Shown here: positions 541 through 37,329 of the stretch, piece after piece
Position numbering within the stretch: the first letter of the stretch is position 1
Layout of the letters: each line of letters begins with the position of its first letter
DNA from: Auanema rhodensis
Lineage: Eukaryota; Animalia; Nematoda
DNA length: 64,000 nt
Direction: 5' to 3'
Assembly (NCBI GenBank): GCA_964057225.1
Contig: OZ059900.1
Coordinates: 9,672,001 to 9,736,000 of the forward strand
Notes under the pieces: model-generated
The model's database searches: none
Seen by the model: only the letters and a program-made list of their open reading frames with translations
What the model was told of the DNA's origin: nothing
Made by a program: the position numbers and the translations under genes

Positions 541-3500
541 ACAATTCCCCCCCTCTCCCCTCATCCTACAAACGAACGTGTCTGGATATCGAAACGTGAC
601 AGATGAGGACGACTGGATGCATGTTGTCGTTTTCCCTAACAAGATAGCCCAGTTGACGACGCAAACGTTTCTCTTGCATGTTGAAATGAACGCTTCTCAT
701 CGTCATCGTTATCTTTAACACAGTCCACATTGCTCAAAAAAATTCATCATCAGCCACCGAAAGAAGAAACCGAAAAAACGCAGTAATTTGAACAATTTTT
801 CAAGCTCAAAAAAAATTTTTGTACAATTATTATAAGCAGTGACGTTAGCATTTGTTTTACTGAGAAGAAGAGAAAAAAAACATATTTTGGATCAACTCTA
901 CTCCGTTTACACAAAAATAATTTTAACTTACTCTTATCTAATTAGCATTGAAAACTTGGCCTGTTATTACATATGAAAAAATAATTTATTTTCATTTCTT
1001 TCATTATAATACTTCTAAATTTATCTTTTCATTCTTGAACAATATTTATTTTTCAATTGAAGCATGCTTAAAACTGGCATGTAACAATGTGTTCGAATGA
1101 ACAACATTCCTTGTTACTGTATTTTTTGAATAAATAACTATATATATATCTTCCTCAACTAACTATATATATATATATATATAGAAAGAGAAAAATACGT
1201 TCAAGCAGATGGTATAGTCTCCTAATTAAAGTGAGTAAATTATTCTTCTCTAAAGCTGTTATATACAATGACAGCTATACTTAAATAGATAGATAATATA
1301 CCATTTTATGAGCAGTGCTATCCATTGTCCACATCCATTTATACTTTTTCATTTTCTCTTGACAATCTGACCTCGTACCCAATTTCAAGCATTTTTCAAT
1401 TACTTTGCAGCCTCTGCTCAAATCTACAGCTTGAAATTTTGATTCTTCAAAATTTTGCCATTTTTGAGTAATTAATCCAATGAAATAAGCTTCATTACCT
1501 ATTATCTTGTAATTTAAAGTTTTGTGTAACATGGTTTTAATGAAACTTATTATATATCTCAGTCTTGTCTCTAGACAATTTATTCAACTTCTCACGATCA
1601 GTATGCATGGTCGACAACTCAATCACGTCAAAAGTTTTTTTCAATTCTTCTGTTTTTCCCATTGCATGCATCATCATTATTGGTATCTTGTTTTTTCTTT
1701 TATTTTCATATAGTAATAACTCATGTATTTTGTCAAATAATATGAAATTTACTGCTTTTGCATATTAGGCAATATAACTTTCTTATCATTAGAACATACT
1801 ATTCATTATTCTTGTCACCTTTCTGCTCATGGTAATGGTTGTTCTTTCTACTTTTCACAGAGGATTCACTGTTTTCCTTGATAGCCACGTCGTCAGGAAC
1901 GTGTCACTACTGTACCAACGAAGGCCAAACTGAAAGCTTAACAATCTTTGGCTTTATTTTCGCTTTTTATCATTCTGTCGCTCCTTTCCGATTTTTTTGT
2001 TTCATCTTCACTTTCATTAACGTTGTTCGCTACCCTCTGTATCAGCAGCAATATCTACATCAGACTATCGAAATAGAGAGGAATAGATGGTAGACTAAGA
2101 GAAGTGATGTAAGATATAGAGATGGCGTTGATTACCAGACATGTTAATGATGCCGAAATTATGAAAAAAACGCCAATGAAAGAAAGACAGTCAACATGTC
2201 GAAATCGTTCTGTTTTCATATTATTCAACATGATTTCTAGTCCTATTTTCTATTCCAATTAACATCATAATGTTTTTTTTTGTAAAACATGTACTCAATA
2301 TCATGCATCTCATCGACTAGAGAAATGATTGAAAAGCTGACTGATAATAGGGACGAAGAAACCTATCACCAGATATGATTAGAGCTCCATTAAGAAAATC
2401 ATTTGAAATCATATCTAGATAAACAGCTTGTGTAATATATCTATCAATTATCTCTTTGCAATATCCATTTGATTTATTGCTCGTTTTCTTCCCGGTTATT
2501 CAGTCGTGTTCGATTTTTTTGTCGTATTGGCTTTATGTAGAGTGAAACTTCTTTGTTTCAGTTAAATGTATTTTTCCAAATATTTTTCTCAAACTCTATC
2601 ACTGGCTATTGCAGAGTTTTCATGCTTTTGAAGTAAAATAATATTATTTCATGCTCTATTCCTATCACTATTGCACTTAATGAGAGACAGTATTCAACTA
2701 TTTTCAATTTACAAAATTGTTATTTGAATGCTCAAATGAGTATTTGCAAGTGTGAATGTCCTTAATTATACTTTTTTTCTGCAAAAAAAAGTATAATTTC
2801 AAATATTAAACTTAGTTTATATCTAATATTATAGTTTATACTCCAAATTTAGTATTATATATATCATTTAGTATTTGTGCAGCTTATATTTATCGGCTTT
2901 GATTTCATGTTTCATCCTATTCATTCAAAAACTATAAAGAAATTAATTATTCTTTCCCATAATGATATTCAAGCAATATGGGGTCTAAAAGGGTCATCAT
3001 TACTTATTCATCATATATCTCATCCAATTTTCAATACAATATTCTATTCGTAATTATGCATTCACTAGACAACTTATAGAAATTTTTTTCATATGCAAAT
3101 TACACCTGCATACTGATGTCCTAGCTACCATGAGAAAAAAAGGCCAGCATTGTGGTCAGTTTTTCAGCTATGCCCTTCAGCGCTATATCCAAAAAAAACT
3201 GTGATGACAAAAAAAACGTTGACGAAATAGCCATGCTAAGACTTGCTAACATAAAAAAAAAGAAAATCATGGTTCATCAAGCATAACAATGCACATGCAT
3301 CTGTGTTTAAATGTCCTCGCTTGTCAGACCATAGCGTCCATCGTGCGCACATTGTTCTGGCAAAATTTTCCATCTGCTGTAGCTTGCGTTATGTTATAAT
3401 CATGCATGTTCTCTCTCTTTCTCACTTCCTCCTCTCTTTCTCACTCCGCCTCTCTCTTTCTCTGTCTCAGTCTCTACTGGCTCTCCCTCTTTTCTTTTTG

Positions 3501-6500
3501 CGTCCTATGTTAGCAATGCGGCACTACCGTCATGATATGCCACAGACAGGCACCTGATGGTGCCATCTCATTCAGATTGCATGGTTGTCGACGACCATCA
3601 CAAATGTGCAGTCAGCTTATAATCAAGCTCCACAATCATACGAAAAAACATTTTTTTACTTTTCGAAATACATTCATGATTCGTTTGTTTTTTTTTGCAA
3701 ATAAATGTTGTTCTTTCATTTAATTTGGGAGGCAGAACGAATACAGAATAGCTGTAAGATTAGATAGGCACTTTCGCGCCAATTTTCATTCATATCTCAC
3801 GCACTCAGTACAACAACTCATATTCTACAACAAAGAAGCTTTTTTTAACCTTTCTTATTCCTTTTGTATTGTTTCTTCCTGCGGATTAAGGTGAGAGACC
3901 TCCCATATCTTTTCTTTTATTTCTTTCCCATTTTTCTTTCGGATCTGACCAACACAAACTCATTGTCCTCGTTGTTTCAATTGTCTTTTTTGTCTTTCGT
4001 TTAGCAATAGTTTTCAACGTTTACCAATACATATGACTTTTTCTTGTTTCTACGTACTTTTCTCACAAAATTTTCGAAATAAAGCGTCACATCGCGCTGT
4101 TCTCTTCATTCACCTATCCACCACTAGACACGTTGGCCAGCTACCTAATGACATACACGAATAGTAACAGAGAGAGGGGATGGAAAAGAAATCTTCTCTC
4201 CTTTCTTCTAATAGTTGTTCGTCTCTCTCCAAGTTTTCTGGGTAGCCTCAAAGAAAAACGCTTGTTGGCTATCTCTCGGCATATCTTCACAATCAGTTGA
4301 TTTCGTGCCTTCTTTAGCGCCATTAATCATTTTTTTTATTTCGCTTTGCCTTCAGATACAAAATTAAAAAGTTCTCGTATATCATCGGATATTTCATTCA
4401 TTTTCATCCCATTCAACCTACTTAGTTCCATGTTATTATATAGCTTTTAAGAAGTAATATATTTTGTTAATTATTGTGATTGCCTTTTACGTCTTTTTTC
4501 TCGAAATTATATAACCAAAGAGCATCCAAGAAGCTATTAGCTTACCATATTATGGATTACGTTTTTGAGTTTTTCCATCTTTTATAAACTCATTACATCA
4601 TTTTCAGCATTTTCAACACCATTACGTCTTTTTTCAATTACAATTTTTTAGATATTTGAACTACCGTATCGTTCTTTTATATCTTTTTTTTATAAGTTCT
4701 ATAATCTTAAGTCGTCATAAGCTGAGAGCTATTCATGATTGTTAATTCGTCGTGTGTGTGTTCATGCTCTGAAAATATACTAAATATTAATCGCTTACTG
4801 ACAATACGCTCGTTTTGACCTCTTAAATTCATTTTTTTTCTTGGCATATTCTGAACTGCTTAATGCTTTTTATGGTTTTTTCACGCTTTTTCTACTATCT
4901 CATGACATATAGATCATCATTAATCGCAGTGCTGAAACCCTCCTTTTTCATTTATTTTGCATTGGATGGGGCCACGGTATGCAAGGCTCATCTGAGACAG
5001 AGCCTACACTCTCCTCATCCTCCTCTCCCATCCTTGTAGTGTTCATACATTCATTTTGCATAATTTTGCCGTTCATTGTCATCAGCGACAGTTTCTGTGA
5101 CAACGAAACCATTAATTGTCCAGTTTGAACCAATTCCTTTTTTTTTCAATCTGCCTCGGACCGCCGACCCCTTCATTTACCCTACCGTCTTTGTCTGTTC
5201 TTTTGCTCATCCCTCCTACTTACCGCAGTTTTGTTTCAAAGAAAACAATGGGAAACCTGTAGTCGTTGTTCCATTTGAGCTCATTTTCTCCTTTCCCTTG
5301 TCCACCCCTTTCTCTCTGACTCTTTTTTCCCTCTCTTTCTCATTCATCAACAGGTCCACATTGGGTGGTCGCTCATCTCTTTCTCATCATTTTTGCTAAT
5401 CCTTTTCTTACTTCATCGTTTCGAATCTTTTACAAGTGTCCAGTTGCCCATCCGAACGTGTTTTCCTTTTTCATGCTCATTACTGTTTGTATCAAATTCT
5501 TTTATCCCTCCTAATCTCTTTCTCCGTGAATAATTTCATCTTTTTGTCTATAACCTCTCAGTCTTTATCAGCATCTTCTTTTCCTTTTACTTTTTGCTGG
5601 ATAATTTTCATTTTTCTTTCATTAATTATCCAATTTGTTCTAATCAATTAGCTAAACAGTTGCTTCCCTGTTGTTTTTCAGCCATCTTTTGTCAACTTTT
5701 TCCACTTCCACAAAGTTTTTTTTTCTACATTTTGAGTTGTAAAATCTTTATTCGCTCCGTTTCTTCTGCACCTCACAGATGGAACCAATTTACTGCTCTC
5801 AATCTGTTGCTTGTTAATTACTTTTATTTTCAAAAGACTCTCTCGCCGTCTCTTCTTCTCTCAGCTTATGTTTCTTGTAATAGAGACCTCCTAGTTCATT
5901 TCGTTTTTCTTTCAAATTCTCTTTTTTAAAAACTCAGCCCATTCTATCCAACTTTACGGCTGTCCTCAGCTACACTTCAATTTCATTAATAACTGTGGCA
6001 GGACACACACACATGGCCTCTTGCATATTGCCCTCCATTTCGAAAATAATCGCTCTTCTTCACCTTTACGTTTTTTTTCTCCACCTAACTACTGCTTTCC
6101 ATTATTCGTCCTTTACCACTTTCTCTTCTTCTCTTGTAACCTCCTGTCTGCGTTCATGTCCTAAGGGTAGAAAAAATGTGTCTGCAATGTTCTCATCTAA
6201 TCCATCCGTTTTAATTTAAATGTCTGTTGTCTAGCAGAAAATTTTATGAGCCAAGCATATACAGACAGAATGAACACTGGCCTGAATAAACGGTTGAATG
6301 TGAATGATTAAGTCCTTATTCGTTTTTCTCTCAGATTTTACCTAAACTAAAGCCTATTTCAATAGTACTATTTCATAATATTTTAATTTTACTATTTCGT
6401 AATCTGTTTGAGTCTACGCAAGAATCATTTTCTTTTTCGAAATTTAGCACTTTTCCTTATTTCAACAACGCTGCTTGTTACATCTGTGAATATCGAAAAG

Positions 6501-8816
6501 TTCAATGCTTCAAAGCAGATGTAAAACCTAAAATGAGATATTGAAGCTTTTCCCTCAATCTAGAACATAGCTATATCTCCGTATGTATACATTTGTGAAT
6601 GTGAGACGAAAAGGAGAATGTGCCCTCAGTACAAACTCTTTGTATTGTTCTGTTGTAGATTTTCCATTTCTATGTCATCATGTTTCTATATTTAACCCGC
6701 TGTTCTCTTTATTTGATTCTCTCTCTCTCTCGAATTCGCATACTCCTTCCATCTTTCACTCATCCCATCTCTCACAGTTTCTATGTAATTATTCGAGTGA
6801 TCCCGTTCTGAACGGTTTCACTCTCTTCGTTTCTGTCCGTCTCAATCTCTCCGTTATTCTCTATATTTTGCTTTGAAACTCTATCAATCTCTCTCATGTT
6901 CTCGTTCCTTAGTTCATTGTGTCTATCATACGCCTGAGGGTATGAAGATTTTTGTACTATTGAACGTATCGCCATCACTTATTTAGATTTAAACTACTTG
7001 GGTAAACCACTAAAATGTGTTTATATTTGTTTATTTATAGAGCTTTCCTCTGAGAGTTTTCGTGTTTCATCTCTTCTCCTTATTGTGCTTTTCCACGATC
7101 ACGACTATGCCGTTTTCATCATTTTGACCTTTTTTTTTCGTTCCTCCCATTATTCTCAACTTTTTATTTTATTTTTTTCACTTTCGAATATTTCTTGTCT
7201 TCGGCTACTAGCTCTGTACGCATTTGACCATGTAAAATACTACGAGCGCATGCGAACGTGGAAAGAGTTCATGGAAGCGAATCAGAAAGAGAAAGCACAG
7301 CATCATAGTAGATATGAAAAATGTACAAAAAAAATATTACGTTGTAGTAGGAGAGTACAGACAGTTATCCCGCCAACCATCCGACAAACTGTCTGTACCC
7401 GACATCCTAATGGGGCCAATTTTCGCATCGCATCGTTTGGTATCTGTCTGACTGCATGAGCCCGTTTTCAAGTTATGTCTAGCTGTCGTACTAGCCATCT
7501 AGTTTGCTTTTGTGGGTTTTCATGTCCTTTCCATTTCAAATTGGGTATGCCTATTGTTCAATTAAGTTTCAATAATAAACTATGATTAGTTAAATGGGAA
7601 AAAAATAGTTTTGCGTTGAGAAAAGCGGGCTTGTTCTTGCGCCAAGCCAAATTGAAGAATTAGTTTTCAATTGTCATGTTGAAGAAATATTACTTCATCA
7701 GTTATTCTCCAGGACGTTTGGATCAAAAGCCGTGCCGATTCCAAGGCTCACCCCTTTTTTGTACGATTCACAATTTTTTTCTCGTTTTTTCTGTTTTTTT
7801 TAATGTTCGTACAAAAGCTTCAAATCTCTATTTGCTCAGTTGCCTTGTAGGACTAAGAGAGGAGAGTCTTTTTCTTTGCACTGCGTCGCCCTGCTCTCTG
7901 TGCCTCCCACTCTGTTCTCTTCTTGCTCATTCTCTTTTCTCCATATCTCTCATTCATATTCTGACTCTCTAGCACTATATCGGCACAGTCTTTCTCAGTT
8001 TGAATTTTTCGTTTTCGTTTTTCATCTTTTTTTTCTGCACAATCCTTATTCTTTTGCTCTAGTTGACTTTTTATCTTCCACTTCTCCAAATTGCATTGCT
8101 CATTGTATATTGAACGCATTCACAATATGATTTAGCATAATGTATCGGACATCGTCAGCATATTAACTGCGTTTGGCTGGTGCATAGCGTCTCCATGCTG
8201 TGTGTATGTTTGAGTGCGTCATGAAACATTTGAATTTGTTTGAAGGACAAAGTGAATATTTTTGATTACAAATGGAAGAAAGTGCAGATGTAAAGCCAAA
8301 GCCAAATGCTCTGAATTCATATTTTTATGATTTGTTTGTACAAAAAATACAGACAAAACTAAAAAAGCTGGAAAAAACTTGGCCAGCGATTTGAGAGTAA
8401 ATGTGAGAGAGATGAAATAGGACAATTTGATAAAGTGAAGCTAAAGTGCATCTCATGATAAGCATCGTTGAACAAAGAATTATACAATTAATATTAGCAA
8501 ACATAACAAATTTCGAATGAAAAAATAGAGAAAAGGGCAAATTATTTGTATTATTGTTAGATACAAGCTAGAATTATGTGTATGTGAGAAGAGTTTAGAT
8601 TTTTTTGTTGTAGAAAGACCACCACCAATCTTTTCGTTCTATCTCATCTAATTAGTCAATTCGTTTGATATTTATCATTTGAAGACTGATTTATGTTGTT
8701 TCTCAGTTTTCTGTTGTATTTTCTTGCTTTGATTCCAATCATATCTCTGTCTAATTTATCTTTTTTTCCATTTCATTTTAGATGGCTTTTACTCTGTTGG
8801 AATCTCTTAATATCCC

Positions 8817-8860
8817 CCTCTCTCTTTCTATTTCTCTCTCTCTCTCTTTCTCTCTTTCTG

Positions 8861-8893
<33 letters not shown>
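8817..8893 (+). repeat. Imperfect (CT)n microsatellite
   Basis: Directly visible run of ctctct/ctttct units. Confidence 0.85.
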
Positions 8894-11800
8894 ACTCTTT
8901 TTCCAGCTTACTCTCTTCTGATCTTTTTCATTTTTTTCCTATTTGCCATCAATTATTATTTTATGTTTTTTATTGTTTCAAGCTGTATTAAATCAAATAA
9001 TTACTTTCATTAGAGCTTAATGGCTCGTTTCCTGTTTCTAAAGTAGGCTATTCTTTTATTTTTTGTCTTTCATTTTTTCATTCTCATCTTCTGCACTTAA
9101 TTTTTCGCTTCGTATGGGTGCGAGTGTATCCGTATGTCCGAAAGACCCTCAGTACACAAAGATAGTTCTGTTGAAGGAGATGAAAGAATGCTAGCTGAGG
9201 TAGTAAACGCATGAGAGAGTTAGAGATGGAGAATGCACAGAAAGGAAAAGACCTAGAGAGATGGCTAGGCTTCTGATTAATCGAAGACCGGTTCTTCAGA
9301 TTTAGCTGACTGGGCGCTAGAAGTATTGGAGATGCAGAGAAGCAGAGAGAAGACGAAATATTCAAAATATGAAATGAAGACAGAGAGGTGAAAACGGACA
9401 ATGAATAGAAAGGAATGCGAAAGTGATGAAAGAGAGATTGCGCGATTGAGAAAGACAGAGATCGCGGGGGAGAGGTTGAGAAATCGTCCAGAAAGGGAGC
9501 GGTTTTCGTCGTAGTCGACAGGCGTAGAAAATGCACTCTTCGACTTCAGACAATCTAATACTTCTTCCATCTCTCTCATCAATGGGCTATTTGCTAACTG
9601 TCTAGCTAGCCTTCATCTCTGTCATCTCATTGCCCTTACCATTAGAACGAAATCTTTTACTCCCTTATTCTGACAGATTTTCTCTCATCTTCGGCGCCAT
9701 TTCTCCCATTTCTATCATTATCTTCTATTCTCCTCAAGGCTTCGGTACATACACACCTGAAATGGGTGAGCGCAGCGCTAGAGATACAGAGAAAACTGCA
9801 GGTAATGTGGGGTTAACGAAGGAACGTACTACACCAATAATCTAAAATAAGAACATGACGAACAATACCGCTGTTAGAAAGCCTGACGGTTATAGAGTTT
9901 TTGTTGATCGTATGTAAGATTTGCGCACGCACAGCGTTACGGAATCGAACTTTTTTCTTTTCTTTTTTTCTCATTTGCACTAGCCTTTCATGTCCAAAAT
10001 ATTTTTTATTTCAGCAAATTTTGGTTGAATAAAGAGATTAATAATATTATTTAAAGCTATTACATCAGATTTGAAAGTTTGCACTTTCGACAGACATGTA
10101 GCGTCTATATAACAATTTCTAACTATATATATATATTAAAATCTATGTTCCCATTTATGTATTGATTGATTCTTTTTGCCGCCCAAATTATTATATTTGA
10201 AACAGTTTTTTAATGTATAAATATTTTTTGTATGACCGCGAGTAGCAGATGTATAAAATAAATAAAGTAACAGGTAACATATTCGATTTCATATGATGCC
10301 GTATCTTGCGTATGTGACCCATGACACTGATTTATCTACTTATATATACTTAGTATTGTATAGCACTTAGTTATAGTATATGTACTCTGTGGTAAAAATC
10401 AATAATCATAATCCTAATGAATCAGATCATAATACACTTTGAGCACATGAGTACATGGTACCTCATTCTCTCTCTCTCTCTCGGTTTACCATCCTATATT
10501 TTAATATTTTGCTGTTAAATGAAAGTTTTCATGTTTTATTTTCTATTTTTATGATGTTTATACTATATTTATAATTTAGTTTTTTTCCCGTTACTGTCAT
10601 AATATTTGATTTATTGCTATATTCTTGAAATTCACTGATATGTATATATTTGATTTGACTCGCTCGGTTTTACAGTTATGTTCGTATTTTCGTGCGCCTT
10701 CTAGAAGGGTTTCAAACTCTTCTTTGTTTCTTTTCAATTTTTTTCGCGCTTTTTTGGCAATTTTAGTTGTCTTGAAAAACGCATATGATCTTCATCTGCT
10801 CCATGCAGCTCGTAAAAGGCAATTGTTCTCAATCTCACATAAAATTTAGCGTCATTTCACTCAATATGGCAGTATTCTTATAGATAATGTATGGCATTTC
10901 CTAACTCTTTATCCTTTCTTTATTCTCTTTTTAGACATATAATTTCATTTTCTATTCTCTCGCCATTCATGCCATTTATTTTAGTTTGAGAAAAGAGTTT
11001 GAATGAGCCATATGGCTTCATTGTTTTCATTTTGAGTGAATCTTGACTATTCTCCGATTCTAAACCTTTGGCGCAATTTTTAGTTTGATATACTGCAAAG
11101 CTGTGAAGCACATTTCCAAATTCTTTGTTAGTCATTTCAATATTAAGAATCTTTTTCTGCTTTCACAACTATCCGGACATTGGTCGATTTGCATATATGG
11201 TTATCTATGTGATTCTGTCTCCCTATTATCATGTGAATATAAATTATCGTTTAGTCACGTTCTTTTATCCATTTCATGATGATCGTAGAACGTTTGCCTC
11301 CCGCTAATTCTGTTTCTAAATTCGTTTACTTTTCCTTTTGAGTTGAAAATCTTTCAATTCAGAATACCTAATGAGTATATGGGAATATGCCATTAGGGTT
11401 AATTCAGTTTTACTTTAATGCTCAGTCATAAGTCAAAGGCCATTCGTCAAACTCTTCTTCGAAATTCTTTTTTTTTTATTTTAGTTGATAATCCCGCTTT
11501 GGAAAAGAAGCGGGAAAATATTGCAAAATCATCAGATGAGAATACAAAAGGAGTGAAAAGGAAGAAAAAAAGATAAATGAACTCAAAAAGACAGAGACAT
11601 GAGAGAAAAGTGAAAAAATAGATGAAGAAGTGAACAAACTCTGTGCTCTATCAGCTTTTTGCATGTTCTTTTCACCCGGTTCAGCTCTTCAATGTTCGAT
11701 ATATACGGTTTCCCATCGTCACACTACGCACCATATGCAGTTTGCGAGAAAGAGTGTGGAGCATGAGAGCATTACGACAAAGCAAGTGCAAATGGATGCG

Positions 11801-29048: not shown

Positions 29049-30910
29049 TAGTGTGTATATTCATAAGTGCGTTGATGTATTTTTTGTGCTTCATGCTTAT
29101 ATGCATAAGAATTCGTGTTTTTCAAAACTTTTTACTATCATCATACAAATTTCTCATTGAAGAATATACTTTTAATTTTGCTTCCTCATTTAAAAGTTCT
29201 AAAAGTGTTTGTAAACTATTTCACCATTTTGAATCATAAATTTTGAAGAAAAAAACAAAATTATGACTAAGTTATGTCTATTAAAAAAAGGAAAGTGAGA
29301 ATCAAAACATTTGTGCGTAGGAGGATGAATAAGAGCATCACAGTCAAATAGTATTAAAAAATCACTTATCGTTTCAAACGTTCCTTATCAATCAAACATT
29401 TTTTGTTCATTTCTACACGGCTATAATGAATAAAACTATTGAAAACGAATAATATATCATCTTTTCTAATCGTTAATTCAAGAAAATGTTTCGTTTTTCA
29501 TTATTTATATTGCTAACTTGTTTTTTTCATTTCCATATTTCTAGCTCTTCCTGATATGGAACTGCGGGTTGGAGAGAGATATCGGTTAGGACGCAAAATT
29601 GGAAGCGGATCATTTGGAGATATTTATTTGGGTTTGTTCAAGCATAGTTTGAATTTAATTCATTTTTTATTGTTATAGGTCAAGATATCGTTACTAATGA
29701 AGAAGTAGCTGTAAAATTGGAATGTGCTAAGTCGAAGCATCCTCAGCTACACATTGAAGCACGCTTATATCGAGTTTTGTCCGGTGGATTTGGTATTCCA
29801 GAGGTATTTAACTATTATAATTTTTTATTTTTCACTATTTATATTATTTATTAGAAACAAATAATTGCTGTTTTAGGTGAAATGGTGTGGAATAGAAGGA
29901 GAATACAATGTGATGGTTATGGAATTGTTAGGTCCTTCGCTAGAAGATTTATTCAACTTCTGTAAACGCAAATTTTCTCTGAAAACTGTTTTACAGCTTG
30001 CCGATCAAATGGTAAACTATAAGATGACAGCATGTCAACAATAAACGTAATTCATTATAGATTTCACGCATAGAATACATTCATAATAAGGATTATATTC
30101 ATCGTGATATTAAACCAGATAATTTCCTCATGGGTCTAGGAAAACGTGGTAATCTAGTCTATGTAAGTATTTTGAGTGAAAAACGAAATTAGATTATTCT
30201 TTTTCTTAATAGGTAATTGATTTTGGTCTTGCTAAAAAATATCGTGACTCTCGCACAAGAACGCATATACCATATAGAGAGAATAAAAACCTTACTGGTA
30301 CTGCTCGCTACGCTAGTGTTAACACTCATCGTGGAATTGGTATGAGTTTAAGCTGTTATTTTCATTGAATTTATTATTTATTTTCTAGAGCAAAGTCGTC
30401 GTGATGATATTGAATCCCTTGGATATGTTTTAATGTATTTCAATCGTGGCACATTGCCATGGCAAGGATTGAAAGCGGCTACTAAGCGACAAAAGTATGA
30501 TAAGATTTCTGAAAAGAAAATCTGTACATCTGTGGATGAACTGTGTAACGGTTACCCAGGTAATCGTCCGAAGAGCTTGTATAAGCGCTTGATAACCTTT
30601 ATTTCGTTTTAGAAGCTTTTAAAAATTATCTCAAGTACTGTCGTGGACTTGGATTTGAAGAAACCCCCGATTACTATTCACTGAAGCATGGCTTCCGTCT
30701 CCTTTATGAAACTGAAAAGTATCGTTATGATCACTTATATGATTGGAACTATCACAAGTAAGTTGAACATCTTATCCTTATGAACTCATCTTAACAACAC
30801 CTGTTTATAGAACCGGAGGACGACATCAACCACAAGTTCCTCAAGCTGTGCAACGACAACCTATGGCTGCTTACAAAGCCAATAACAATCCAGTCATCCG
30901 CATGGAATGA
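13186..30910 (+). CDS. kin-20: Casein kinase I delta/epsilon (KIN-20/doubletime type), long isoform ~600 aa; exons 13186-13996, 29545-29631, 29679-29803, 29877-30011, 30061-30162, 30213-30339, 30389-30559, 30613-30757, 30811-30910
   Basis: Spliced translation gives [94 protein letters not shown] and LPWQGLKA, all CK1 hallmarks. All introns are GT-AG and in phase. The phase-1 donor after 13996 (G|GTATGT) matches the phase-1 acceptor before 29545 (...[13 protein letters not shown]). The kinase exons are near certain; the junction across 15.5 kb is inferred. Confidence 0.9.
20050..20454 (-). pseudogene. Possible decayed gene relic in the CK1 intron
   Basis: Two GT-AG intron-sized gaps (51 and 50 nt) join in phase to [61 protein letters not shown], with in-frame stops. 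Confidence 0.25.
22957..23296 (-). CDS. Candidate nested antisense gene in the CK1 intron, 94 aa (exons 23296-23234, 23178-22957)
   Basis: A 55-nt GT-AG phase-0 intron joins two overlapping ORF-track frames. Upstream on the minus strand are a pyrimidine-rich tract and the acceptors CTTTTAG and TTGCCAG. No homology recognised. Confidence 0.33.
29556..30910 (+). CDS. kin-20: Casein kinase I short isoform (~326 aa) starting MELRVG
   Basis: An in-frame ATG 11 nt after the acceptor TTTCTAG (29544) corresponds to the canonical CK1delta/epsilon N-terminus. Stop TGA at 30908-30910. Confidence 0.8.
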
Positions 30911-32661
30911 TTTAGCATATAGTATTGATTATGAGATATTTTTAAATGGCTCGTAATACTTGCTATATATACATTTTGCTTCTTATTTCATGTGTTTTTG
31001 ATTGTATTGTGCGCGCTGACTTTGAGGTAATTGATAATAATGCATTGTTTTCTACTTCACCCTTACTGATTTCAGATTATGTTTGGTAATCTCGATAACA
31101 ATCTGTGGTATGCAAGTGAACTGGGGCAAGAAGCTGCTTATTCTTGATGCCGTCATGTTATACACTACGATGCCATGTTTTGAGTATCCAGAGCAGTCTG
31201 CCCTATCCATTTGTCGTTTTGTTCTCGTGCTTTACGCACCGTCAGCTAGCGTTTCATATTAGGTATCTTTGCACACTGTCTATAGCAGATATGCAATGGA
31301 ATCGCTGTATCGCATCGAAAATATGTTTGTGCTAGTCCATGCACATGGTTCATGCACAACGTTGTTTCTACTAAAGATGTGTCTAAGCTTTAGTAAAACG
31401 GATAGTTGATTTGCAAGGTGAATTAGCTAAAATGCAGTACGTTTTCTTCGTACTCAAGTCCGATGTTATATCTTATCATCACTTCCGCATTGTAACTATT
31501 GTTCCAAACATTCCTTGGACGCAAGTATGAATGGATCACCTTGCATCATCACTCTTTGTGCCTATTGTGATTGGCATAGTAAAAGCTTCTTTGACATTTT
31601 CTCAGACCGATACCGCAAAGACCTGTGTCTAGTTTTTTTTCCATTTGCTCCTCATTTGCTTTGACGATTTTGTGTGATTTTATTAATTATATCGAATTCT
31701 TCAAATCATTTGTTTTCCGTTACAGATTTTTCTTGGCCCATGTGTTCCGGTGATATATACGTTTAAACGTTTAAACGCCTAAAACCACATAATCCACGAT
31801 GCATGTGTAATTATCTGATATTATGTTAAGCATTGCACCCACTTTTAATTCTCATTTTCTTTTTTCTCTCTCTTTTTCTCTTTTCTTTTCTCTCTTAGTA
31901 TCCAACTCGCTTGTTGTCTTCAGATGATTACGGACAAATGCTCTATCCACTAACTATTCTGTATATTACCTAGAGAAAGCCTATATTATACTTCAATTGC
32001 CGCTTCCTCATACCCTAGTTTACATCATATTTCAATGCATATTGAAACTACTAACCAGAATTTTAGTAAAACAGATGTATTCCGGTAAAATCTTCTACAA
32101 GTTCTTTCACCTATACAAAGATAGCGCTTTTATGTTCATACTCTTTCTCCTTTTCCCAACCCTCCTCTCTCTCTCTCACTCTCTGGCTCATCTTTGCGTT
32201 GTTTGCGCCTGAAAAGGCCACCCTATCACATTTACATTACTCCTACAAAAAACAGAAAAAGGAAATATTGGCTAATGCCTCTATTTCAAATAATTATTTC
32301 ATGCTACTGACCTTCGATAGGGGCAATTTGAGCCGTACTCTATGCGGGTATTCAAATATTTTTCTTGTGATTATCTTATTTGCCGGCTATATAACAGATG
32401 TCTTCACAGTCATTCTGTTTTTCTGCTTAACTTGAGATGTTGCACTCTTTCATGAATTCATTTCAAAATAATTTAACTATATGTGTATATATCAAGAAAT
32501 ATAAAATTACAAGAATATAATAATATAACGACCTGTTTGATCATTTTTCATTTTCCAATTGTAGCATGCTACATCAGCTATGAGCAGTTCGCACATAGAA
32601 GTATGTTTTAGTTTGATATTCTCTTAGAGCCTATCGGAGCCGGCTTTAGCTGTGCATGATG

Positions 32662-33083
32662 AATTGTCTTCAATTTGTTCAACCGTCTCATCCACTCATA
32701 CTCTTTCTGTTGTATGTATTTTCCTTCCTTTTCCTCTATTTCCGCAAATTCACATCACGTATCACATTGTCTTCTTTCCCTATATTTTCATCTCATATGC
32801 AACAATTGATTCCGTTCCTGAAAATTCTCAATTGAAATTGTATCCTCATTTCAACCTATTGTACTTTTAACTATGCGATGCAACTGTAATTATGTCTTCC
32901 TAACTATATCTTTCTAATATTTCTAATTTTCAAAATAGGAAATATATGAAAGAAAAGAAAATTATCAATCACTTTGTTCTTTTTGTTACTTGTTGTATAT
33001 TGATAACCGTGATTGATGTATCTAATTGTATTATTAAATGAATTGACGTGTTATTTCTAGAAAAAACCCGTTTTGTTGTGAAT
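32662..33083 (+). repeat. Direct repeat copy 1 (422 bp)
   Basis: Matches 34496-34918; the only difference I found is one T indel near the 5' end (caatttgttc vs caattttgttc). Confidence 0.95.
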
Positions 33084-33401
33084 TTCAGAAAAATCGTAAA
33101 TGAATCTGTCTTCCTAATCATGTGTTTATCTAGTTAATTACTATTTCAACATTTTATTTCAACAAATGCTTTATAAAAGCAAAATGGGACAGAAACTTTG
33201 GAATACTGAGTAAACATTCATGGCATGTAAACAAACTTTATAAAGAGGAAGCATTATTTCATTTGATAAAAAATGAACTAATTGTTTAAAAATAATTGAT
33301 AAACCTGATTGAAACTTAAATAAACAAATGAAATGAAATGAAATTCATTCTAAACTTTACAGTTGATAGTGTTCTATTCACCAGAGTCATCATTAAAATA
33401 A
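33084..33401 (+). pseudogene. Probable truncated 3' fragment of another gene inside the insert (exons ~33084-33095, 33134-33226, 33363-33401)
   Basis: An open 93-nt phase-0 exon (LITISTFYFNKCFIKAKWDRNFGILSKHSWH) between TCTAG and GTAAAC, then a TTTACAG acceptor, LIVFYSPESSLK* and AATAAA at 33428. No start codon; the fragment is cut at the repeat junction. Confidence 0.4.
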
Positions 33402-33573
33402 TAATTATATCAGCTTTATTCATATTGAATAAAAGCATTTTTTGAGGATGTCTTGGAGAAATGTTACCTTTATTCTAGTTGAAATATAGTTTTGAAGCTT
33501 TTATTGTTATAGAAATACACAGTGAAAACAAAATATGCACAGAAAATGTAAATCATGCAGTTTCCGATCTTGT

Positions 33574-34206
33574 TCATGTTGAAGAATTCTTTTTTGGAGA
33601 ATATCCCATAAGACAATCAGGAAATACGTTAATTGGCCCATCAAATGCCTTTGGATTCTAAACTCAAGTAGTTAAAAATTTGATAAGTTAATGATTAAAC
33701 TACCAAAACATAATAATCAGCTTCTTTTTTCTTCAACAGTTTATGAATATGAGGAGTTTTAACAGGGGAGTGAAATAAGGCAGTCTAGGGAAAAATGAAA
33801 TGATTTCAAAAATTTGGTAAACCTTACATCGAATTCTGCTGAATCACTTTGTCGATTATGAAGCTGAAGACAATCACTAATCTGATCCGTATCCAATGGT
33901 TTACAAACATCTTCTGGAGATTGTAAGCATCTTTTATTCATATTCAACCATTTCTGAAATCGTTCAGATTCAAACATCTTCATATTTATACAAGCTCACT
34001 CTGTAGCCTGGTAATGTGCATAACATTGCATATTGATATCTCAAAACTCGTACCAGATTAGGATCAAGTTTACTATTTGCCAGAAAATCAGTTTCTACTT
34101 CCCAAGATTTATGCTGATTGTCAAAGCTCGTTTGCAACGGTGAAGACCTAAACTCTTCCTCAGTTTTCCCATTGATTTCCACAATTGATTTAGTTATTTT
34201 TGGCAT
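33574..34206 (-). CDS. Orphan hypothetical protein, 165 aa; exons 34206-34000, 33953-33828, 33784-33704, 33657-33574
   Basis: Three phase-0 GT-AG introns of 46, 43 and 46 nt join into an open frame MPKITKSIVE...LPGYR|KWLNMNK...SAEFD|TALFHSPVKTP...YYVL|NPKAFDG...GYSPKKNSST*. A TTTTTAG acceptor (likely trans-splice site) lies just upstream of the ATG, and AATAAA lies ~70 nt after the stop. No family recognised. Confidence 0.85.
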
Positions 34207-34354
34207 TTTTATCTAAAAAATCAATTTACTAATAACTAAAAATGCTGCATATAAAAAGAAAAATCAAAGCAAATAGAGGCTTATCAAATTTCATTTTAAA
34301 TGTGAAAATTCTAAAGAGAAATATAACTAAAATATCTCTTTTACAATGATATTA

Positions 34355-34429
34355 TGGCGGCAAAACTTCAAAATTTCCCTCTGAGACTACATAAATAAAT
34401 AATTTTTATCAATAACCCGCCTAAATTTG
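34355..34429. promoter_or_regulatory. Candidate E2F/CDE-CHR-like promoter motifs upstream of the orphan gene
   Basis: TGGCGGCAAAACTTCAAA (34355-34372) and CCCGCCTAAATTTG (34416-34429), 150-220 nt upstream of the ATG in otherwise very AT-rich DNA. Spacing is not exactly canonical. Confidence 0.35.
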
Positions 34430-34495
34430 TCTAATTTTAATCCCAACTAACTTCGTCCCGTCCAAACTTCTTTATTGATATGCTTTTTCACTACA

Positions 34496-34918
34496 AATTG
34501 TCTTCAATTTTGTTCAACCGTCTCATCCACTCATACTCTTTCTGTTGTATGTATTTTCCTTCCTTTTCCTCTATTTCCGCAAATTCACATCACGTATCAC
34601 ATTGTCTTCTTTCCCTATATTTTCATCTCATATGCAACAATTGATTCCGTTCCTGAAAATTCTCAATTGAAATTGTATCCTCATTTCAACCTATTGTACT
34701 TTTAACTATGCGATGCAACTGTAATTATGTCTTCCTAACTATATCTTTCTAATATTTCTAATTTTCAAAATAGGAAATATATGAAAGAAAAGAAAATTAT
34801 CAATCACTTTGTTCTTTTTGTTACTTGTTGTATATTGATAACCGTGATTGATGTATCTAATTGTATTATTAAATGAATTGACGTGTTATTTCTAGAAAAA
34901 ACCCGTTTTGTTGTGAAT
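34496..34918 (+). repeat. Direct repeat copy 2 (423 bp)
   Basis: Same sequence as 32662-33083. The ORF track shows the identical peptide CSTVSSTHTLSVV...FNLLYF at both loci. Confidence 0.95.
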
Positions 34919-35336
34919 ATTTAATAGAGTTCTTCTAATAAATTAAGCTTAACTTGAATAACTATTTTATTATTTTCACAAATATTTTATACATGCATAT
35001 ACACATACATTTGTTCTGTTTTATTCGCAAAGGAATAAAAGTTTTACTAGAATTAAGAGGGCAAAAAGGGCTTGGTTTTGCATTCTATATACTAAACATT
35101 TCTCAGTGAATCATTAAGATAATTGATTATACTAATTGATTATTCATAGATATATGAAAAGACAAATGATTTGTATTAATAAATAATACGAGTATTGTAA
35201 AATGAATACTGATAGTATGCATGACCATAATGTGATAGAATTAACTACAAACGTTAGTAATTTCTTTTTTGTTTGTTTTTTTTTTGTTTAAAATTTAATT
35301 TGAAGTTATGGATATCACAGACTACAGCAGTCATAC

Positions 35337-37329
35337 TTATAATGCTGCCATTAATGTTTCAGCTAATGACGATGATATTGTCGACCAAAATGTTCTAGAA
35401 AGCAAATTGGCCTAAAACAACAATAAGAAAACGGATAATAATTGAAAAATTGCGCTATGGATAGAAACGAATGCTGGCTACAATCTCAGCTGCTGTTTTC
35501 TTTTCGTGTCGACTCTGATTGGCATATCGAACAGCTTCCGGAATTAGTTGGCAGGCAATAAAATCTTTCGTATCGCGCCAGATTTGTGTCTGTTGAACAA
35601 TTTTATTATGATTTTTGATATATTTACTAATTATTGATTACCTGTTTTCTGGCGCTATTTGCAATAATTTGACTTGTACGCAAACGCGAATAGCGGTCGA
35701 TTGTTTCGGCTCGTGCTTCTTGTATTATTTTCATGAGCTGCTTCTGCTCATCAATCTGAATTTTATCCGATTTATACTTTTATTTTCTATTCCGTTTACC
35801 TCCATTCGTCGAAGTAGTTCAGATCTACTAATGGGTGGAGATCTTGAATTGGTAGAAGGAGTCTGGATAACAGTAGTAGTTATCTTTGGTAATTTTGTGA
35901 GAGGCTGAGCTTTTCGTATAATCTGTAATCCAAAATTTTTTATTCACTTTCGAAGTTTGTAATATTTGGTTGATACAAAAATTTAATAGCCTGCTTACCG
36001 TCTGAGTATTCTTATTGGAGGAAGATGGGGCACTTGTTACCTTGTCGCCAACATAAAATTTAGTTGTTTTCGTGTTGATATGTTCTGATCTAGAAGCAAA
36101 ATTTGCGAATTATCCGCTTTTGTTACCCAACAATAGACTAACCTCGTTGCTCGTATTCCATTTCCATAAACTCGTAATTGCGGCACATCGTGAGCTTCAA
36201 TTGTATTGCTCAATTGAGTAAAGTTGCGAGGTTCTAACATTCAAAAATGAGTATGTCATCATCTAATACGCTAAAATAGTTATACCTTTTCCAATTGCAG
36301 CAGTAACGTTTGTTTTGGATGAGCCATTACGGATAGCAGGTACTATAACATAATGTTATTTTTTATAACTTTATTGATTGCTCTTGTTAATTTCATTTGT
36401 GCACTATGATAAGTATAACACTCACCAGGGGAACTGGAACTTAATTTTCTATGCATGTTTGAGGAAGAAAATAGAGGTTCTCGACGAAATTGACCTGTTC
36501 ATAATATTATGTAAAATGGAAGAATAGCGAGATAATAGGAAAACTGAATGGAAATTATAAAGAAAATTACCTTTTTCAACAGAATTTTGCTCGTAGGATT
36601 GATCTGCATGCGGAGCTTGTCTGAAAAGATGTGATAATATATATCTATATATATATATATCAATGTATATATATATAGATATATATACATATAGTTAATA
36701 GCTATGTTGCTGAAAACGTTGATGATAATGATGATGAAGCAATTCATGCAACTCTCACATTGATACACATGTACGATTATAACATATTTAACACATACTG
36801 CCTAGATAATGATGGGAATGAGCTCGCGTATCCGTTATGCTTTGAGAATGTGACTGATGTTGTCTTTCCGGGCTCTAATCTATTACTGAAAATTAGTAAA
36901 GATAATTGATGCAAATGAAGTATTTGACAGCTTGGTGCTTTTTCAATTTCATCATCTTTATGCTCTTATGTTTATTTCATTTAAGATGCACCCGGATGAC
37001 ATGAAGAACGGATATTAGATGGTGGTCAAAGTTCTTTTGCAAGAACTGCTTTCAGTGAAGGTGGGTGAACATTCTTATTTTATTTATTATCTTTTACTTA
37101 TTAAAAAGTATGCAAAATTGGAAGTTTTGCAAGAAAATGCCTGCTTTGAGGATTAGCATAATGAGTACTACATTCATGTTTTGAACTACTTTTACGTACA
37201 ATTTAAGCATTAAGTTTACCTCAACTTTGAGCGCATTAGGGGAACAAATTGTTGCTGCTGATGTACATTCTCGAGTGCTGCTACACGCTCACGCACTGAT
37301 ACCAGACGTTCTCTAGCTGCCATAGTCAT
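35337..37329 (-). CDS. Hypothetical protein ~324 aa, 11 exons: 37329-37220, 36885-36799, 36620-36571, 36494-36426, 36342-36286, 36233-36143, 36089-35999, 35922-35800, 35755-35642, 35589-35482, 35411-35337
   Basis: Ten GT-AG introns with consistent phases give a 975-nt open frame: MTMAARERLVSVRERVAALE, an S/T/P-rich middle, and a helical C-terminus ELLRRMEIDEQKQLMKIIQEARAETIDRY...LAETLMAAL*. The start may extend upstream. Confidence 0.85.

Follow-up and report, generated by a model that had tools for sequence, protein, structure and literature searches.

Organization of the locus

The 64-kb window (the whole stretch of DNA that was analysed, 64,000 nucleotides long, whose coordinates are used throughout) contains a casein kinase 1 (CK1) gene on the plus strand, a weakly expressed multi-exon gene (gene D) on the minus strand, and between them a small expressed gene on the minus strand that lies in a single-copy segment bounded by two almost identical direct repeats. 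We refer to the left flank as L, the two repeat copies as A1 and A2, the middle segment as B and the right flank as R, and the features of the locus are as follows:

29556–33088, plus strand: CK1 gene (alpha/delta type); ATG at 29556, coding sequence stop at 30908–30910, 3′UTR to at least 33088
32662–33083, plus strand: repeat copy 1 (A1), 422 bp; final part of the CK1 3′UTR, within the CK1 mRNA contig
33084–34495, no strand: segment B, 1412 bp, between the repeats; matches only itself in its own genome
33099–33104, plus strand: AATGAA, 16 nt after A1 and 11 nt beyond the end of the CK1 contig
34496–34918, plus strand: repeat copy 2 (A2), 423 bp
34937–34942, plus strand: canonical AATAAA, 19 nt after A2, read from the sequence
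35455–37300, minus strand: gene D, multi-exon, weakly expressed; stop near 35455, spliced in RNA contigs at 35589/35642 and 35922/35999 (CT..AC)

The DNA belongs to the 180.9-Mb PacBio HiFi plus Arima Hi-C assembly of the inbred A. rhodense line APS4 (bioRxiv 10.64898/2026.08.27.747507), a line that was taken through 50 single-hermaphrodite bottlenecks (PMC6469403). The genome that we searched is the 180,911,798 bases of Auanema rhodense APS4, and the read evidence consists of Logan contigs from four runs. Run X10 is RNA, as is shown by the splicing of its contigs, and run X9 is DNA that includes GATC-ended contig pieces of the sort that an Arima Hi-C library would give.

Exon pieces of the CK1 gene match solved structures of CK1 delta/alpha with E values of 2e-17 and 3e-11, and Pfam searches with single CK1 and gene D exons, which are short pieces, returned no match. 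A 4893-nt CK1 contig from X10 has introns at 30758–30810 and 31025–31073, the latter in the 3′UTR, and is then unbroken from 31074 to 33088, a span that takes in the whole of A1 and 5 nt of segment B. The CK1 3′UTR is about 2.1 kb long and the 422-bp piece is its end. No RNA is present in the read contigs over 33089–33497, between the end of the CK1 contig and the gene in segment B, or over 34919–35161, to the right of A2. AATGAA is a common variant of the poly(A) signal in nematodes, and from its position the one at 33099 is probably the signal that CK1 uses at present.

The direct repeat and the evidence for its arrangement

Pairwise alignment of A1 and A2 gives zero substitutions over 422 bp, and the sole difference between them is one T, where A1 has TTT (32674–32676) and A2 has TTTT (34508–34511). 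Their similarity stops abruptly at both edges with no decayed extension, and each copy has AAT at its start and AAT at its end; the probability that two random trinucleotides in the window are equal by chance is 0.023. The distance from A1 to A2 is 1835 bp, they are the only repeat of at least 80 nt in the 64-kb window, and the 422-bp piece is present exactly twice in the 180.9-Mb genome. The A1-B-A2 layout is real, and it had been precisely described in the first-pass annotation, whose 1412-bp segment between 422/423-bp copies differing by one T is confirmed by the alignment, as are the AAT trinucleotides at both repeat ends. Its view that the repeat is young is also upheld.

DNA searches of the same 180.9-Mb genome found segment B to be single copy genome-wide and found no second locus for either flank, so a haplotig or homoeologue is not a confounder here. 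Apart from the locus itself, searches with the segment, the repeat and the flanks returned a CK1 paralogue on C3 that is 75–78% identical, and a short palindromic element that is present in about 100 copies.

One possibility is that the assembly falsely duplicated a 422-bp piece. The A1|B junction is bridged by an X9 contig (33054–33387), by an X15 DNA contig (32955–33105) and by RNA run X10, the A2|R junction is bridged by an X9 contig (34895–35514), and the L|A junction is seen in X10. The B|A2 junction (34495/34496) is bridged by none of the listed contigs and rests on the HiFi assembly, which is the observation that speaks for an artefact, and short-read graph contigs are unable to span a 422-bp repeat. 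HiFi reads, however, are far longer than the 2.3-kb structure and the line had been bottlenecked 50 times; moreover, the A|B, A|R and L|A junctions are present in other libraries, the TTTT variant of the second copy is present in an X15 contig while the RNA contig has TTT, and the two X9 repeat contigs have depths of ~1580 and ~2230, deeper than the flanks at ~1080–1110 and segment B at ~900–1020. These X9 depths correspond roughly to a double-copy repeat and a single-copy segment B, and we regard an artefact as very improbable.

No contig with an 1835-bp skip, as expected of an empty, gene-less form of the locus, is present in any run; X9, X13 and X15 probably come from the same strain, and contigs hide rare forms. 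Runs labelled "organism C" contain DNA of this locus at 2–7x without differences; these reads are probably traces of the same strain and are given no independent evidential weight. In low-depth runs, two contigs end exactly at structural boundaries, and this weighs against the local duplication that we favor below.

Near-identity of the copies would be uninformative about age if the duplication were old, shared with relatives, and kept identical by gene conversion. The lack of any substitution in 422 bp fits such a history, and direct repeats 1.4 kb apart can convert one another. Nonetheless, the edges of the repeat are clean and abrupt, with no decayed extension, and conversion seldom maintains 422 bp, right up to both ends, in perfect form for long; an old duplication is on balance decidedly unlikely. 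In the search for the locus in a sister species, a word search with a 52-aa CK1 exon and an exact look-up of the exon-1 open reading frame of the gene in segment B gave no match.

The gene in segment B

Segment B contains one gene, which is oriented tail to tail with CK1 and whose exons are as follows:

34000–34212, minus strand: exon 1, 69 codons; RNA contig and model; TTTTAG acceptor at 34218–34213, ATG at 34206–34204
33828–33953, minus strand: exon 2, 42 codons; RNA contig and model
33704–33784, minus strand: exon 3, 27 codons; RNA contig and model
33469–33657, minus strand: exon 4, 27 codons plus 3′UTR; stop at 33576–33574, RNA contig reaches 33498

A 590-nt RNA contig is made up of exons 34218–34000, 33953–33828, 33784–33704 and 33657–33498, which are joined across introns of 46, 43 and 46 nt, all GT..AG, and it ends within ~50 nt of the gene's AATAAA poly(A) signals (33505–33500 and 33474–33469, minus strand). 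The introns of the neighbouring genes are 42–76 nt long. The open frame is 165 amino acids, and none of 20,000 shuffles of the coding sequence (0/20,000) stays open. The 5′ end of the contig extends past the TTTTAG|A acceptor by 6 aligned nt, of which one is mismatched, and then by 4 loose letters; this end fits the tail of SL1, CAAGTTTGAG, and not SL2, so that the message appears to be trans-spliced to SL1. The canonical SL1 leader has more than 1200 occurrences in the genome, mostly in a 252-bp array on C3. The trans-splice site of the gene is 283 bp from A2, which lies upstream of it. The RNA contig bears out the earlier prediction, made from the sequence, of a complete four-exon gene with introns and a trans-splice-like acceptor, and the predicted polyA signal is present in the sequence.

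The predicted protein is hydrophilic (GRAVY −0.67), and its maximum 19-residue hydropathy is 0.48, from which it follows that it has no membrane segment and no signal peptide. None of the four exons matched Pfam at E values up to 10, and a protein search of the worm's own genome with exons 1 and 2 returned only the gene itself at E values up to 10. Exon 1 (69 aa) gave 0 matches at E values up to 0.001 among 1.84 billion representatives in a HMMER search of a library that lacks this species' proteome, as is evident from the failure of exon 1 to match itself there. Fragments of RabGAP-TBC proteins were returned for exon 1 by a protein atlas (best score 0.86); these are weak leads that we do not trust. 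An AlphaFold prediction for exon 1 alone, from the single sequence, consists of helices with low confidence (pLDDT 64, pTM 0.30). As far as tested (Pfam, paralogues in the genome, and exon 1 against the 1.84 billion proteins), the orphan status proposed in the first-pass annotation is upheld, with support for exon 1 only, and we call it the orphan gene below. About 15% of A. rhodense genes are without homologues in the species compared (bioRxiv 10.64898/2026.08.27.747507), so an orphan gene at this locus is not unusual.

A likeness to nematode toxin–antidote loci had also been suggested, and we found nothing in support of it. What the locus may have in common with elements such as peel-1/zeel-1 and sup-35/pha-1 is, speculatively, a young lineage-restricted gene at a structurally variable spot. 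Unlike those elements, segment B holds a single 165-aa gene and not a linked pair, and its product has neither a membrane segment nor a signal peptide.

The direct repeats around an inner part give the locus a superficial resemblance to an LTR-like element, and in LTR retrotransposons and TRIMs, too, an internal region is enclosed by two near-identical direct repeats a few hundred bp long. It is nevertheless extremely improbable that the gene is a retrocopy or is carried by a mobile element (LTR-like, TIR or Helitron). In 181 Mb the repeat occurs twice and the inner part once, whereas such elements would not be confined to a single occurrence. The repeats lack TG..CA ends, neither a primer-binding nor a polypurine tract adjoins them, terminal inverted repeats are absent, and the DNA outside the repeats shows no short target duplication; an open reading frame for a transposase or reverse transcriptase is likewise missing. 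The cellular gene that makes up the inner part has introns and is encoded on the opposite strand, in which it again differs from the internal regions of LTR elements and TRIMs. A retrocopy is ruled out by the three introns that the RNA contig shows to be spliced and by the lack of an A-tract at either end of B. The absence of TIRs, LTR ends, a polyA tail and a transposase, all noted in the first-pass annotation, is confirmed with no mobility open reading frame found, and its claim of a non-retro origin holds. To our knowledge, a 422-bp duplication is far longer than any made by a transposase.

Origin of the A1-B-A2 arrangement

Any origin of an A-B-A arrangement needs two new junctions, and we considered three histories that would create them. 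In the first (S1), B entered an L-A-R ancestor and A was duplicated in the process. The second (S2) starts from L-A-B-R, with a copy of A then placed where B meets R, and the third (S2′) starts from L-B-A-R, with the copy of A placed where L meets B.

S1 corresponds to the earlier proposal of a DNA-mediated relocation of the gene with a 422-bp target duplication. Here the ancestral locus would have been CK1, a single 422-bp piece and gene D. A 1.4-kb genomic fragment with the whole orphan gene in it would then have been inserted, with the 422 bp ending up on both sides of it, either because a staggered break was filled in or because a replicating end copied the fragment at another site and, on switching back, resumed 422 bp short of where it had left. 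The near-identity of the two copies fits this history, and a switch-back within ~1 kb of the stall point has been described (PMC5783719). Without the segment and one of the copies, the CK1 end looks intact, has an AATAAA 19 nt further on, and faces the 3′ end of gene D. That AATAAA, by making L-A-R a neat CK1 end, counts against the local duplication that we favor below. This "emptied locus" argument is correct in that the AATAAA after A2 is real, but there is also an AATGAA at a similar offset after A1, and hence it is not decisive; since both signals are present, poly(A) signals are neutral between the readings.

The difficulty for S1 lies in the source of the inserted DNA. Insertions with long target duplications, made by fill-in of staggered breaks or by switch-back during BIR, have the same A-B-A layout, in which identical host sequence flanks a unique block, but unlike those insertions there is no source for the block in this genome. 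If B had been copied in, by whatever version of S1, a near-identical donor should be present. The search for a donor of 33084–34495 in the worm's own genome, which had been suggested as a check, returned only the self match at the DNA level; donor, paralogue and relic of B are all absent from the genome, and B is at single-copy depth. S1 then requires an additional loss of the donor, or cut-and-paste of non-mobile DNA. It also leaves the AAT at both repeat ends unaccounted for, and under it a 1.4-kb fragment taken at random would have to contain one complete gene, no more and no less, along with a promoter that works within 283 bp. With B single-copy, no donor, and only 422 bp doubled, we find relocation of the gene unsupported, and consider S1 possible but not probable.

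The fact that only the 422-bp piece is doubled, while B is unique and its donor absent, favors a local duplication of the UTR piece. The gene looks native, given that its 43–46 nt GT..AG introns are like those of its neighbours and that it appears to be trans-spliced to SL1. Similarly, the unbroken CK1 contig through A1 and the AATGAA at 16 nt indicate that the A1|B junction works as a normal gene end. Near-identical local duplications elsewhere in the genome, found in the survey of C8 given below, count in favor as well, as does the published class of template-switch rearrangements (PMC5783719). We judge it reasonably probable that the orphan gene is native to the site and that about 420 bp of the CK1 UTR was copied locally in a templated duplication, the template having been switched twice at AAT. 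The event would then have run in the direction of S2 or S2′, which we favor over S1 with moderate confidence, and A2 is favored as the newer copy.

Under S2, the event might have proceeded as follows. A DNA end being extended in the course of replication or the repair of a break, and already past the upstream region of the orphan gene, would halt at an AAT and re-anneal to the AAT in front of TGTCTTC in the CK1 UTR, 1.8 kb behind it. It would copy ~420 bp from there as far as the next AAT, and then rejoin the AAT from which it had departed and continue. The net result would be a tandem duplication of an 1835-bp unit minus the gene in the second unit, created in one event with two switches, and the ancestral B|R boundary would read ...CACTACA-AAT-ATTTAATAG. 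If a single target AAT served as the microhomology for both departure and return, equal repeat ends are expected, although a 3-nt microhomology is weak evidence by itself. The homopolymer slip between TTT and TTTT is 13–16 nt from the B|A2 junction, a position that low-fidelity synthesis just after a template switch would explain.

Comparison with known rearrangements and consequences for the locus

Rearrangements in which a fork stalls, the template is switched and returned to, and a duplicated piece is inserted nearby are a described class (PMC5783719). The FoSTeS/MMBIR events described there as "templated duplication with intrachromosomal insertion" (Leon-Ortiz et al. 2018, PMC5783719) likewise gain a nearby segment with the source kept, and, if the local-duplication reading is true, they would resemble the present locus in having two novel junctions with short microhomology (putatively AAT here), a return to the point of departure, and a small slip beside a junction. 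The A. rhodense case differs from them in being very small and local, with 420 bp copied in direct orientation to a site 1.4 kb away and no loss of target DNA. It also differs from the helicase mutant of that study in being a natural event in an inbred wild-type line, and its mechanism is read from the junction sequence alone.

The CK1 message retains A1 as the end of its UTR in the RNA contig, and it would end shortly inside the gene-bearing segment, judging from the 5 nt of B in that contig and the AATGAA beyond them. Recombination or single-strand annealing between the two 422-bp direct repeats should be able to delete the gene, and loop-out between A1 and A2 is plausible. If the local-duplication reading is true, the locus is a clean natural two-switch templated micro-duplication in a nematode, in which the CK1 UTR end is intact, a UTR piece has been copied in front of the neighbour's promoter, and a 422-bp direct-repeat substrate able to delete an expressed orphan gene has been created. 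Such an event would not be surprising, and the locus could be of use as a marker or as a natural single-strand-annealing reporter.

The germline genome of A. rhodense is remodelled by massive programmed DNA elimination. It is conceivable, though rather unlikely, that A. rhodense recurrently inserts DNA blocks with perfect 0.4–2.4-kb target duplications and that this locus is a gene-sized case; if so, an orphan gene would have moved without leaving a donor, in a cassette precisely removable by recombination. The locus would be of greater import if the insertion were true and were part of such a recurrent long-target-duplication process in a species with programmed DNA elimination. A survey of twenty 10-kb samples of C8 (200 kb, six of the samples satellite-filled) found two further near-identical local repeats, one direct, of at least 2209 bp and 100% identical, and the other an inverted pair of 3681 bp that is 99.8% identical.

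Contig Ends and a Short Motif at the Repeat Boundaries

32662–33083, repeat copy 1
33084–34495, single-copy middle segment
34496–34918, repeat copy 2

Among the Logan contigs of sequencing runs X13 and X15, two of low depth (33083–33308 and 34496–34794) stop exactly at structural boundaries, and they do so without the 30-nt overlap that is expected of a graph break at a repeat; these exact ends could reflect a second sequence context in the sample, or they could be due to chance. The 13-mer ATGAAT+TGTCTTC, which lies across the junction between the left flank and repeat copy 1 (32659–32671), occurs a second time with one additional C at 33100–33113, 16 nt into the middle segment, and its TGTCTTC portion is also found within the repeat at 32768 and 32893. 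This recurrence may be due to chance, may represent a motif of the UTR, or may have been left behind by the rearrangement.

Other Repeats in the Genome

Two further near-identical repeats were seen on the contig C8. Piece L037 (C8:9320001–9330000) has a 100% identical direct repeat (5116–7324 and 7792–10000) of at least 2209 bp, a lower bound since the second copy runs to the end of the piece; its start-to-start distance is 2676 bp. The pair represents a perfect tandem duplication or, alternatively, a further A-B-A arrangement with a 467-bp middle. Piece L032 (C8:9220001–9230000) carries a 3681-bp inverted repeat (1821–5501 and 5637–9317) whose arms are 99.8% identical and are separated by a 135-bp spacer.

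A large ~164-bp tandem satellite array with units 96–99% identical fills L024–L029 (C8:9.06–9.17 Mb), ~0.5 Mb away from the gene-rich window. Across the genome, exact matches to the 22-nt SL1 leader number 1187 in forward and 80 in reverse orientation, and most of them lie in one array with 252-bp spacing (L019/L020, C3:6.74 Mb).

Features of the Neighbouring Genes

31025–31073, plus strand, spliced intron in the casein kinase 1 (CK1) 3′UTR
36637–36700, TA-rich palindromic element (~57 bp) in an intron of minus-strand gene D

The CK1 stop codon (30908–30910) is 114 nt upstream of the 3′UTR intron, and in many animals a stop codon so placed marks a message for nonsense-mediated decay; the layout may instead reflect an alternative C-terminal isoform. 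A DNA search of the same genome found ~100 copies related to the gene D palindrome, many of which match on both strands.
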